From Amoeboradix gromovi X-113 (lineage: Eukaryota > Fungi > Sanchytriomycota), in NCBI GenBank assembly GCA_018985225.1, contig JADGIF010000098.1, positions 1 through 20,777 of the forward strand: a stretch of 20,777 nt of DNA, given 5' to 3'. Shown one piece after another: positions 3,305 to 20,662 of the stretch. How positions within the stretch are numbered: the first letter of the stretch is position 1; each line of letters starts with the position of its first letter. A program made the translations under genes and the position numbers. The notes under the pieces are model-generated. The model searched no databases, was not told the DNA's origin, and saw nothing but the letters and a program-made list of their open reading frames with translations.

Positions 3305-5663
3305 TCAAGCCCAATTCATATTTTTGGATTCCTTGGTATTTCCAATAAACTCTTGTATTTTCTGCATTCTATATTAATTTTAGTTACAGTGCATTTAAAA
3401 CCGGCCCTTGACTAGTAACTAGCTTGACAGTAGTTTTTTTAATCAGGTCTCCATGTGTAATCATAACATCTGTGTCCCCAAATCTAGTATTTAAAATCTT
3501 TGAATATGGAACAAAAAGTATCTCTTCAAACTTACTCGTCTCATGTATATATAAACCCTTTGCGTTTACGGTGACCATGGCTTCTTTTTTAGTCTTTGGG
3601 TAATCAGGTACTGCCATATAATATGAAAACCCCCCATAAAGTTTTAAGTTACTTGCTAACATAATATATGCATCATGCAGTTTGTCTTTTGTATAGCTAT
3701 TGTAAAATGATATTTTCTTGAATACGTCATTCCTCAGTTGCATTAATTCCTTGTTCATATTCTCCGAAAAAAGCGAGGGGATATCTTTTTCCGTTGAGTC
3801 TCTGTATTTACCTAATATTGCAAACATGTCAATTAATTTATCCTTATTGTTTGCAAAATCAGTGCTTGTTATCCATTTCCCAAGCACTACGCTAGCGGCC
3901 GCCTGCGAGAACTCCATGTAACTACTTGGAATCACTGCCGGTACTTTCCACAATATTTTAGTCAATGTCAGTCTATGAACATTCAAGTCTTTCAACTTGC
4001 CCTTGACAGCTATCGATTTTAGTTGACTAAATACATCCAAAACATATTGATGATCATCCGGTACAATCACCTCACCTTCTGGGAGCACACCACAAACAGT
4101 GGATATATTATATAATTCATCTTTCATATCTATTTTGTTGGCAATCATGTCTAGCAACTCTCCAATCGTCGCAAATACATCTACTTCAAATGTCTGTGGT
4201 TGACTACCGATATGAACAGGTAGCGAAACTGGTTTGCCATTTATAATCGCTGCAAATTCTTCAACTGTTGGCAAAAACAATCTGTCTTTTATAGTTTCTT
4301 TTAGTTTTAAAAACTTTAAACAGTCTTCCGCTACGGTATTCCATGATTTTGTCGTGTTCAACGCTATTGATATGCAATGCCTTTTCAAATACAGTTCTAT
4401 ATTCTTTGGTGGTTTGGTAAAGATACAAATTAGTTTGATCAAGTACCAGCCTCGTTGTTCCGAATCTCCGATTCCTCTATTGTTAGTTGTTTGCTTAATA
4501 ACCTGGGCTATGATCTCTTCTAACAGCTCTGGATATCTCTTACAAGCCTTTAGTACATTCATTGCTGCCTCTTCTTTGTTAATTCTATCGTTTGGTAAAT
4601 CCCCCATAAATATCATAATATTCGTAAACGTATCGATTGCATCATCCTTGTCCTTTAGCATGCACATTTGCATAGTCAAGGGCCCCTTGACTACTTGCTT
4701 AGAGAACTTCACTAATTCTACGGTTGTTTGGTTACCCCAATCAGTGGTTGACTTTGTTTTAGCCCTCCTTAGGGTTCCAGTATTATTGTTTGCGGTGTCC
4801 TGTTTAAAAAAATATTTAATAGCATAATCTATGAAGTGATATTGATCCAGCTCCTTGGCTAATTGCGGATCAACCGATCTCATAGGATTAGCTTGGCTAG
4901 GATCTCCAACAGACCTGCGATTACGTTCATTAGATTGTATAATAGTGGACTGAGCAGTTCTTAATGTAGGCTCGTTGGGTTCGTTTTCCTCATCTCTGTA
5001 CTTGCGAATAAGATACTTTACAGTAAAAACATCAATAGCCTTAGAGTTGGTGAAAATTGGTTGAAGAATTTGAATAGGGACCCAATCCATGGAGTCATTG
5101 ACCTCTAGACATCCCCAGAAGTTGTCAGGACTTATTTGAATTACAGTTCCTGTAGTGTATCGTTGAATGATTTTGTTATGGGGGTCAGTGAAGTCCTGAA
5201 GGACTACTGCTCGATACTCACCACGAGTGAGAATTTTGAGATAGTTTTCATAAACTTTTTTAATTCGCTCTCCAGGAGCAGCGAGCTCAAAAGAATCACT
5301 TTTCGTAGATATAACTAGGGCAGAATCTGTAAAGTTATCAAGAACAATGTCATCAAAGGTGTAATCACTGCCAAGGAACTCAACACCATTAGAATAAATG
5401 CGCAGATCTAACGGTTTTTGTTTATGTAATACTTTGAAATAATGATGAAAATACTTTGTGCGGGATAGTGATTGAATCTGCGGTTTAAAGTCATCGAAGT
5501 TGGAAACGGATAAAGCAGTAAAATCAGCATTACATAGTTCTTTAATTTTGTTAAAATCGCGTTTAATTTGACCGACTAAGAATTCCTTATCTTTCATATT
5601 TGTAATCTCTTGATCCTCATATAGACTTCTTCTTATTATTTTAATTTTAAGTCCGGAAGACAT
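3305..5663 (-). CDS. SH3-MyTH4-FERM protein (myosin VII-type tail without motor), 779 aa; exons 5663-3388 and 3368-3305
   Basis: SH3-like YRAVVLQDF..FWG..DWVPIQIL. MyTH4 IMIFMGD..EEIIAQVIKQTTNN..RGWYLI..RLFLPTVEEF. FERM C-lobe LKLYGG..VTVNAKGLY..TSQG. Removing a 19-nt intron extends the frame (LMQKIQEFIGNTKESKNMNWA) to TGA at 3307-3305. Confidence 0.85.
3369..3387 (-). other. 19-nt spliceosomal intron GTAACTAAAATTAATATAG
   Basis: GT-AG ends, branch-like ATTAAT-A-TAG, same length as the ARF1 and HP1 introns. Splicing completes the terminal FERM helix and places the stop directly against the neighbouring gene's stop. Confidence 0.75.
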
Positions 5664-5745
5664 GCTCTGGCCTAGTTTTCAAAATTCGTATTCAGAGCAA
5701 AAAAGACGTGGGCCAATATCATCAAGGGGTAAAGTCCATAACAAA

Positions 5746-6039
5746 ATGTCTACTGCATCCCCACCAAAATCAAACACCAAGCAACTTCAATCAGAAGTAA
5801 ACGAAGTAGTGGGTATTATGCAAGATAATATCCACAAAGTCATGGAAAGAGGAGAACAGCTGGATCAGCTACAGACGAAAACTGATGACCTGCAACAATC
5901 TAGTATGCAATTTAGGCGTGGAGCTAACAGAGTGCGAAGACAGATGTGGTGGAGAGATATGAAAGTTAAGCTATTAATTGGCGGAACCATTATTATTATT
6001 ATTATCATAATTGTAGTCGCTGCAACTAGTGGAAAATAA
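5746..6039 (+). CDS. Synaptobrevin/VAMP R-SNARE (Snc1/2-like), 97 aa
   Basis: LQSEVNEVVGIMQDNIHKVMERGEQLDQL..FRRGANRVRRQMWWRDMK plus a C-terminal TM anchor. Start most likely the ATG at 5746. Confidence 0.95.
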   Translation: MSTASPPKSNTKQLQSEVNEVVGIMQDNIHKVMERGEQLDQLQTKTDDLQQSSMQFRRGANRVRRQMWWRDMKVKLLIGGTIIIIIIIIVVAATSGK

Positions 6040-6408
6040 TAAATTGCATTTTTATTCATATATGCTGGATTTTGCTGCGAACTCTTGTTATGCTCTTTGA
6101 TGGTTTAAACTATATCCTATGCTTATTAGCATATTCTCGGTTGTGGAGTGGCTCTGGTATGCTGGTCCTATACAATTAGCAGTCTACAGAGCAAAACCGT
6201 TCCATCTCGGTGAAATTGTGCTATTTAAGCTAGTCTATGGGATTGTTTCCGTAAGGTTGGGGGGGGGGGTGCACTTGGGGTTAGTTTCTTATGCAAGGGC
6301 GTTTTAGGTCCTCTCTAGAAGTTTAATATCTGTGCAATAAACTTGGGAATTGCTCAGACGTTTTTCGTTACTTGGGCGAAAAATCATCCAGAATGCGTAT
6401 CAAGCAAA

Positions 6409-19456: not shown

Positions 19457-19506
19457 AATCGCTTCATTTGTGACTTAAAAAGAAAATGTCCCAGTTGAAT
19501 CAGAAC

Positions 19507-19917
19507 ATGGCAGGCGCAGGTAAAGGAGGAAAGAAAGAAGCATCAGGAGCAAAGTCAAAGTCTAGATCTAGTAAAGCTGGATTACAATTTCCAGTTGGTC
19601 GTATCCATCGTTTACTAAGAAAGGGTAATTATGCGCAACGTATAGGAGCAGGAGCACCAGTGTACTTGGCAGCCGTATTGGAATACCTAAGTGCTGAAAT
19701 TCTTGAGTTGGCAGGAAATGCAGCAAGAGACAATAAGAAAACGAGAATCATTCCTCGACATTTACAATTGGCAATCAGAAATGATGAAGAACTAAACAAG
19801 CTGCTAGGAAGCGTCACTATTGCACAAGGTGGAGTCTTACCAAATATCCATGCTGTTCTTCTACCAAAGAAAGTTAAGGGAGCCGGTAAAGGACCAGCTG
19901 ACAGTCAAGAATATTAA
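19507..19917 (+). CDS. H2AX: Histone H2A, H2A.X-type (SQEY tail), 136 aa
   Basis: [42 protein letters not shown]. Start is 19507 (MAGAGKGGK) or 19486. Confidence 0.97.
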
Positions 19918-20097
19918 GTAAATTATTATATTTTCATTGCGCCCGCGCTTCATACTTTTAATCAATCATTTTACAAGTTATAGCAGCCGGACACTGGTGA
20001 AATCCAAGCTCTTATCGGTTGAAGAATAGATAATTCATTATCCACTCTTCTGTAGATCTTTCAAAAGTACAAAACTAAAGGCATAAAAAAAGAGTAT

Positions 20098-20662
20098 TTA
20101 CTTTTTCTTTGCCAACTGGTTGCTCAACCATTCCAATCCTTCATATAATCCATCCCCGCTGGTAGCACAAGTTGCTTGAATATACCAATTTCGCTGACGT
20201 AAAGCATGTAATCCTAACTTGTCAGTGATTTCTGCGGCACTCATTGCATTTGGCAAATCCTGTTTATTCGCAAACACTAATAAGACTGCATCTCGCAGTT
20301 CATCTTCATTAAGCATTCTCTGTAATTCATCTCTGGCTTCATTTACTCGATCTCGATCATTACTGTCCACTACGAAAATAATTCCCTGAGTGTTTTGAAA
20401 GTCTACGTTAGTAAGGGTTACAATGTCTCCATAGAGGCCTGATTTTATCTTGTCCACCCACATCCCACACAGTAAATGAGATGTTTTTATACTCGACTGT
20501 TTCTACATTGAACCCGATCGTTGGAATCGTCGTTACTATTTCACCCAGCTTTAACTTGTACAAAATAGTGGTTTTACCTGCCGCATCTAAACCAACCATT
20601 AATATACGCATCTCTTTCTTACCAAATAAGCCTTCAAACACTTTCGAAAATGAGAGTCCCAT
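20098..20662 (-). CDS. ARF1: ADP-ribosylation factor 1, 181 aa; exons 20662-20422 and 20402-20098
   Basis: [49 protein letters not shown]. The spliced length is exactly the canonical 181 aa. Confidence 0.98.
20403..20421 (-). other. 19-nt spliceosomal intron GTAACCCTTACTAACGTAG
   Basis: Interrupts the invariant WRHYFQN (cat t|ac ttt). Perfect TACTAAC followed by G-TAG. Confidence 0.97.

Follow-up and report, generated by a model that had tools for sequence, protein, structure and literature searches.

The window analysed here is the whole 20,777-nt stretch of contig JADGIF010000098.1 from the fungus Amoeboradix gromovi X-113 (assembly GCA_018985225.1), in which four genes, encoding ARF1, an HP1 protein, a UBA-thioredoxin-UBX protein and a MyTH4-domain protein, are each interrupted by a segment of only 19 or 22 nt. 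We infer that these segments are spliced, and that they are very probably U2-type (major) spliceosomal introns of ancestral origin, eroded to a floor of 19 nt. They share the marks of the U2-type class, in that removal from GT to AG restores the reading frame, the branch motif is complementary to U2, the genome encodes spliceosomal small nuclear RNAs (snRNAs) and core proteins, and an ancestral position is shared with other fungi.

A preliminary description, made from the window alone, had listed the four segments, and their coordinates and sequences proved correct: every one starts with GTA, has an A at position −6 and ends in TAG. The ARF1 intron (20403-20421, minus strand; 19 nt, phase 1, putative branch A at 20408) separates exon 1 (20422-20662, minus; 80 codons plus one base) from exon 2 (20098-20402, minus), which matches Pfam Arf. 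The HP1 intron (18395-18413, plus; 19 nt, phase 2, branch A at 18408) follows an exon encoding the chromo domain and the start of the chromo shadow domain (17940-18394, plus) and precedes one encoding the end of the latter (18414-18477, plus). In the UBX gene, the intron (16944-16965, plus; 22 nt, phase 1, branch A at 16960) joins exons at 15902-16943 and 16966-17144 (both plus). As had been proposed for these three genes, excision restores conserved motifs, which read RPLWRH/YFQNTQG in ARF1, RCPQ/KVIDFFESHL in HP1 and IRLP/NASR in the UBX protein (slashes mark the junctions). No motif had been tied to the intron of the MyTH4-domain gene (3369-3387, minus; 19 nt, phase 2, branch A at 3374; exons 3388-5663 and 3305-3368, both minus), which is now confirmed by comparison with an ortholog, where another 19-nt segment occupies the equivalent site and the last exon is conserved. 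This MyTH4-domain protein (3305-5663, minus) is without a myosin head; SH3-like and FERM-like parts were recognised by eye, and Pfam detects MyTH4 only. At all four loci, leaving the segments in place leads to a stop within 1-5 codons, and the 19-nt pattern occurs three times in the window against 0.02 expected (100 shuffles).

Intron sites in relatives and other fungi

Contigs from lake metagenomes include syntenic relatives of the window at 65-85% DNA identity. Further sanchytrid-like genomes with strong synteny to A. gromovi (L011-L017, L141-L144) were found in ENA lake metagenomes and in the metagenome-assembled genome GCA_043777775.1. Intron lengths at orthologous sites in A. gromovi and a relative were 19 and 19 nt in the MyTH4-domain gene (relative L011), and 19 and 22 nt in HP1 and 22 and 19 nt in the UBX gene (relative L017), with unrelated spacer sequences. 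Splicing at the UBX site of L017 would yield RLSNGQR, a textbook-like motif. An intron in a TBC gene occupies the same site in four genomes (19, 22, 19 and 20 nt) and one in Sec10 in two (19 and 19 nt). The branch motif has decayed in relatives (TTCAT, TTTAT, CTTAT), and the A at −6 is retained.

Read in the spliced frame, the last exons of orthologs differ mostly at third codon positions, which indicates purifying selection. Identity reached 13/18 residues in HP1 (mismatches mostly at third positions), 33/58 in the UBX protein (14, 17 and 43 mismatches at first, second and third codon positions) and 13/20 in the MyTH4-domain protein (5, 3 and 14). These comparisons bear on the concern that the frames were broken by assembly or amplification artefacts, the genome having been made from amplified single sporangia by whole-genome amplification (PMC8371127). 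An independent Logan assembly matched positions 16000-20777 of the window base for base, with zero differences and zero gaps, although the DNA run behind it is probably the source run itself. The relatives come from unamplified lake metagenomes and carry introns of different sequence at the same sites, and hundreds of segments obey one grammar. We give an artefact a negligible probability and regard it as refuted by the orthologous introns, to the extent that sequence comparison can decide.

The ARF1 site was also found outside sanchytrids. At WRH/Y, in phase 1, Allomyces javanicus has an intron of 92 nt and another fungus (L147) one of 78 nt; in a sanchytrid relative, an Arf paralog carries one of 19 nt at this position. 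The ARF1 intron is therefore ancestral and shrunken, with ARF1 the one gene for which a position shared with longer spliceosomal introns of other fungi was established. Batrachochytrium salamandrivorans has an ARF intron of ~184 nt at this site with a one-base frame discrepancy at the acceptor, and we did not rely on it.

Genome-wide intron pattern and length floor

Matches to GTA-Nn-YTAAY-N-TAG were counted across the A. gromovi assembly (10.55 Mb, 1319 contigs, ~36.8% G+C) and are pattern counts, not annotated introns. One protein encoded by this assembly shows 100% identity to an entry of the A. gromovi set EP00835 in EukProt. There were 441 matches at 19 nt and 354 at 20-22 nt, compared with 127 over 14-18 nt and 589 over 23-42 nt (by subtraction). 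Neighbouring lengths provided the background, the reversed pattern being unsuitable as a control (ATG end, inflation by coding sequence). At ~25-29 matches per length, this background leaves an excess of ~680 introns at 19-22 nt, a lower bound given that introns with looser branches and GTT donors also exist. The first 100 of the 20-22-nt matches comprised 57 of 20 nt, 27 of 21 nt and 16 of 22 nt (hand count). The short, branch-fused introns suggested by the window thus form a sharp genome-wide peak at 19 nt with an additional excess at 20-22 nt and the A fixed at −6, and the claim that a fungal nuclear genome has introns with the branch fused to the 3' splice site and no polypyrimidine tract was likewise upheld. 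A class of 18 nt or shorter was rejected, with no excess at 18 nt and counts at background level over 14-18 nt, as was a branch at −7, for which the shifted pattern gave 116 matches over four length classes, equal to background.

The preliminary description had assigned a yeast-type TACTAAC branch, which did not hold: TACTAAC accounted for 19 matches, compared with ~800 YTAAY matches of 19-22 nt, and the motif is instead a degenerate YTAAY. CAG-ending 19-mers numbered 75 even with a looser motif, so that the share of TAG is an estimated ~94%. G at +5 was rare (8/441 at 19 nt and 16/354 at 20-22 nt, or 24/795, vs. 14% after any GTA), with T, A and C at this position in 68, 20 and 12 of the first 100 19-mers (hand count). 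A. gromovi introns therefore depart from the canonical 5' consensus with G at +5, which does not strictly define the U2-type; the base has also been lost in Stentor, Paramecium and nucleomorphs. The extended U12-type consensus (RTATCCTT 5' site, TCCTTAAC branch) was not seen in the listed 19-22-nt introns, in an analysis that did not search for U11/U12 snRNAs.

Strict-motif matches in the A. gromovi DNA examined lay at frame breaks in 20 of 20 cases and joined two long frames in 19 of 20, using all three phases. Among the genes so restored are some that we take, from their motifs, to be NDUFS8 (Fe-S motif), CCT, AP-mu, TBC and a Rae1-like gene, and the matches include a 19-nt intron in the KH loop of SF1/BBP (L044:771-1860, minus), a loop that is uninterrupted in the ortholog P0213. 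Intron density is ~0.1 per gene. Origin as Introners, a transposon-derived family, was rejected, the spacers all being different and the positions common to other species and Allomyces. A repeated element end of 24-36 nt (G000 contigs C6, C7, C154, C186 and C206) matches the intron pattern by chance and looks like a transposon terminus.

Segments of 19-22 nt also resemble HAC1/XBP1-type introns in size, and could in principle be removed by an Ire1/HAC1-like or tRNA-type endonuclease, or bypassed by ribosomal frameshifting or hopping. The GT-AG ends, the motif complementary to U2 GUAGUA, the encoded snRNA core, the sites that in Allomyces and chytrids hold long spliceosomal introns, the variation in length among orthologs and the use of all three phases make such non-spliceosomal routes very improbable.

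Seventeen of 19 tiny introns lay in the 3' half of the coding sequence, mostly one per gene (P = 8e-5, computed for 18/19 before correction of the ARF1 start gave 17/19), in a small positional sample of ~150 kb whose loci were picked by motif or by unrelated family searches and not by position. Last exons of the sampled genes were 21-251 codons long; six of them measured 50-59 codons. The ARF1 intron kept in A. gromovi corresponds to the last of four in A. javanicus. Introns across fungi are preferentially lost from 3' ends (PMC8476143), and those of Stentor, yeast and microsporidia are 5'-biased. The apparent 3' bias in A. gromovi is a lead from a small sample, and it runs counter to the reverse-transcriptase-mediated loss documented across fungi.

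Spliceosome inventory and a possible mechanism

Rfam models, Pfam profiles and patterns were used to search for spliceosomal components. U2 (102 bits), U5 (82) and U6 (65) snRNAs scored above the Rfam cut-offs, and a U1 snRNA at 38 bits, below its cut-off, covers the full model, has a canonical 5' arm and is the sole U1-like locus by pattern; no second U1 with an altered 5' arm turned up. The ACAGAGA and AGC of U6 and loop 1 of U5 are all canonical. In U2, GUAGUA is intact and one extra U lies immediately upstream, in the stretch that links helix Ia to the branch helix. The same U occurs in a diverged relative (loci L038:1501-1695, equal to G000:C363:3739-3933, and L141:11316-11507), an apparently lineage-specific change seen in two sanchytrids. 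Predicted folds of this segment with and without the extra U were uninformative.

Proteins detected were U1-70K (175 aa, short), U1C, SF1, U2AF35, SF3B1 (929-aa frame), Prp8 (2233-aa frame), Yju2, Cwc24 and RBM22, with Dbr1 detected weakly. The N-terminal domain of SF3B1 was not detected with its Pfam profile, which is weak evidence of absence. Slu7 was not detected with one Pfam profile, and the one profile for Prp18 gave only a weak match in a 1102-aa frame. In SF1 of two sanchytrid species, SPF replaces the SRW motif, removing the tryptophan of the U2AF ligand motif (ULM), and a 15-residue deletion takes out the SPSP loop, which is present in 105/113 other SF1 proteins. The SRW/ULM tryptophan and the SPSP loop are elements that contact U2AF65.

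The preliminary description had predicted a reduced or remodelled spliceosome. Remodelling finds support in the U2 insertion, the SF1 changes and the undetected Slu7 and Prp18. Strong reduction or loss of U1 does not, with U1 snRNA, U1-70K, U1C, U2AF35, SF1, SF3B1, Prp8 and Yju2 all present; the spliceosome is not gutted, because U1, U2, U5, U6 and core proteins are encoded. Nor does the inventory resemble reduction of the mikrocytid or microsporidian type, in which U1 snRNA and most U1 and U2AF factors are lost.

Deletion would have eroded the inherited introns of intron-rich fungal ancestors to the shortest length that the spliceosome tolerates, 19 nt; deletion bias acting down to a functional floor is a published model for such length spectra (PMC10245619). 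A 19-mer consists of GTA at +1 to +3, an A/T-rich spacer, a loose YTAAY whose A at +14 (−6) is the putative branch point, a single free base and TAG. U1 may pair over a short stretch only, from the exon end to about +4, through 4-6 pairs and without the lost G at +5; predicted duplexes at A. gromovi 5' sites range from −1.3 to −3.4 kcal/mol, vs. −11.2 for the consensus. The branch motif, at about +9 to +15, would be read by the KH domain of SF1 and the intact GUAGUA of U2, and U2AF35 would read the adjacent TAG without a pyrimidine tract. Together with the canonical U5 and U6, Prp8 would then catalyse the two transesterifications, producing a 14-nt lariat loop and a 5-nt tail. The 3' splice site would be set by distance, making Slu7 and Prp18 unnecessary. 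The apparent loss of Slu7 would fit this layout, because yeast Slu7 is dispensable where the branch lies <9 nt from the 3' splice site (10.1101/212811). It had also been argued that U1 and U2 could hardly bind side by side. Their base-pairing footprints do abut, but without any necessary overlap, which leaves this steric argument no more than suggestive. The U1 and U6 helices would both be shortened by the loss of G at +5, and this may be what permits abutting footprints.

A more specific proposal is that these introns are recognised in a minimal mode, in which the coupling between U2AF65 and SF1 has been dropped, a U2 linker longer by one base fits the 14-nt lariat, a fixed ruler selects the 3' splice site without Slu7 or Prp18, and tiny introns persist chiefly as last introns because they are defined through the terminal exon, in a link with 3'-end processing that would turn round the 3' bias normally seen in intron loss. 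We offer it tentatively and consider it rather unlikely in this full form. It is quite possible that the extra U in U2, the loss of the SF1 ULM and SPSP loop, the loss of Slu7 and Prp18 and the short U1-70K are neutral by-products of general reductive evolution that have nothing to do with intron size, and that a fungal spliceosome needs no modification to splice 19-mers. Sanchytrids evolve fast and are generally reduced (PMC8371127), and the tiny introns of Stentor and nucleomorphs are spliced by machineries whose snRNA motifs are canonical (PMC9505925, PMC6461891). Yet the changes hit the 3'-end recognition module, which is redundant where branch and AG are fused and no pyrimidine tract exists, the U2 insertion is retained in a diverged relative within an otherwise invariant stretch, and the missing SPSP loop is one that nearly all other SF1 proteins keep.

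Several points weigh against identification of the segments as spliced U2-type introns. A search of sequencing runs for the window DNA returned only a DNA run, with no RNA run or cDNA read; a scan of JGI with HP1 exon 1 found distant chromodomains only, and RPL15 homologs included no sanchytrid transcript contigs. The branch A at −6 is assigned from conservation, the inventory covered the snRNAs U1, U2, U5 and U6 and, for U2AF, U2AF35, and the probable loss of Slu7 and Prp18 was judged from single profiles, lacking a eukaryotic positive control, in a genome that evolves fast and is 92% complete. Splicing of the short introns of microsporidia is <20% (PMC6349667), which bears on efficiency in A. 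gromovi. The segments might accordingly be spliceosomal introns that are mostly retained or inefficiently spliced, as in Encephalitozoon, acting as a brake or representing tolerated decay; weak U1 pairing would agree with this, as would the many introns close to the 3' end, at which retention costs less of the protein. Retention would, however, halve ARF1 and break both the Fe-S motif of NDUFS8 and the KH domain of SF1, and purifying selection on the last exons in the spliced frame also argues against it. We consider predominant retention unlikely; it is a matter of how efficiently the introns are removed and would leave their spliceosomal identity intact.

Elsewhere in the window are a cysteine-rich protein with three spondin-like TSP1 repeats (7500-8504, plus), conserved and syntenic in relatives and of a kind unusual for a fungus; a broken Fanzor/TnpB-like relic in several frames (8500-9500, plus) with a DPG motif, a weak OrfB_IS605 match and remnants of the zinc finger and last RuvC motif; a compact WNK-like kinase (13825-14946, plus), conserved in a relative and weakly matching the CCTL2 domain; and a tRNA-Val(TAC) gene (17787-17862, minus).

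Known tiny-intron systems and significance

The ultra-short introns of heterotrich ciliates (Stentor coeruleus, Blepharisma; PMC9505925, PMC13685798) resemble those of A. gromovi in their GTA start, AU-richness, 5-nt lariat tail and complete set of major snRNAs with canonical motifs, and their branch A, which is base 10 in 15-nt introns and base 11 in 16-nt introns, is equivalent to −6. They differ in length (15-16 nt vs. 19-22 nt), in a weak branch motif vs. YTAAY, in the 5' bias of Stentor vs. the apparent 3' bias, in belonging to an unrelated lineage and in being confirmed by RNA rather than deduced from DNA. Introns of chlorarachniophyte nucleomorphs (Bigelowiella natans; PMC6461891, PMC2483917, PMC10245619) are likewise 18-21 nt long with a mode of ~19, have only GT(A) 5' ends, number in the hundreds and are accompanied by canonical U1 and U6 motifs. 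They have no branch motif and occur at several per gene in the relic nucleus of an endosymbiont, whereas A. gromovi has a clear motif and ~0.1 per gene in its main nucleus. The mikrocytid Mikrocytos mackini (PMC10245619) is also a parasite with a narrow size range and a hard floor. Its introns are 16-17 nt and highly conserved in sequence, and 17-19 spliceosomal proteins and only U2, U4 and U6 were found, whereas A. gromovi keeps U1, U5 and many proteins.

Yarrowia lipolytica, Trichomonas and Giardia (PMC2483917) share the lack of a pyrimidine tract and a branch at a fixed distance, and the 2-nt distance of Yarrowia equals −6, but their introns are long (median 204 nt in Yarrowia) with a strong ACTAAC, unlike the tiny, degenerate, TAG-ending ones of A. 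gromovi. A branch at −6 is common to A. gromovi, Stentor and Yarrowia, which suggests a shared lower bound for the distance from branch to 3' splice site. Microsporidia (Encephalitozoon cuniculi; PMC6349667, PMC2483917) are parasitic Holomycota with short introns as well, but these are ~25 nt or longer (mean 35.8, with 76 nt amounting to three times the usual length), number a few dozen, have a strong 5' and branch consensus, are 5'-biased in ribosomal protein genes and are poorly spliced. With sanchytrids sister to Blastocladiomycota, the short introns of the two groups are of independent origin. Myxobolids and dicyemids (PMC13644364) are likewise parasitic, and their ultra-short introns occupy ancestral positions and have reduced 5' motifs, but they are animals, with medians of 22-27 nt.

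The sanchytrid A. gromovi parasitises yellow-green algae and belongs to a lineage sister to Blastocladiomycota, and its genome paper applied TransDecoder to DNA contigs, had no fungal transcriptome and did not discuss introns (PMC8371127). The expectation that gene finders would miss the introns was confirmed in EukProt, where the TBC proteins of both sanchytrids (P0127, P0130) end at the intron and are labelled complete, that of S. tribonematis with a stop two residues past the intron site. Because the phylum's only public gene sets were called without introns, hundreds of sanchytrid proteins would be truncated in phylogenomic databases. The preliminary description knew of no earlier account, and our literature search, whose coverage excluded many subscription papers, found no report of sanchytrid introns. 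A 2026 paper gives microsporidia as the sole fungi with introns <30 nt. The 19-22-nt introns of A. gromovi are probably the shortest class in Fungi.

A. gromovi has an independent variant of the known ultra-short introns and so adds another independent origin. Its combination is unusual, in that the introns are tiny, few and apparently 3'-biased with a real branch motif, U1 is kept, and U2 and SF1 are altered. For the question of minimum intron length, the sharp 19-nt floor comes with discrete changes that can be tested in yeast (the extra U in U2, loss of the SF1 ULM and SPSP loop, no G at +5 and the probable loss of Slu7 and Prp18), in a spliceosome that departs far less from the yeast model than ciliate or nucleomorph spliceosomes do.

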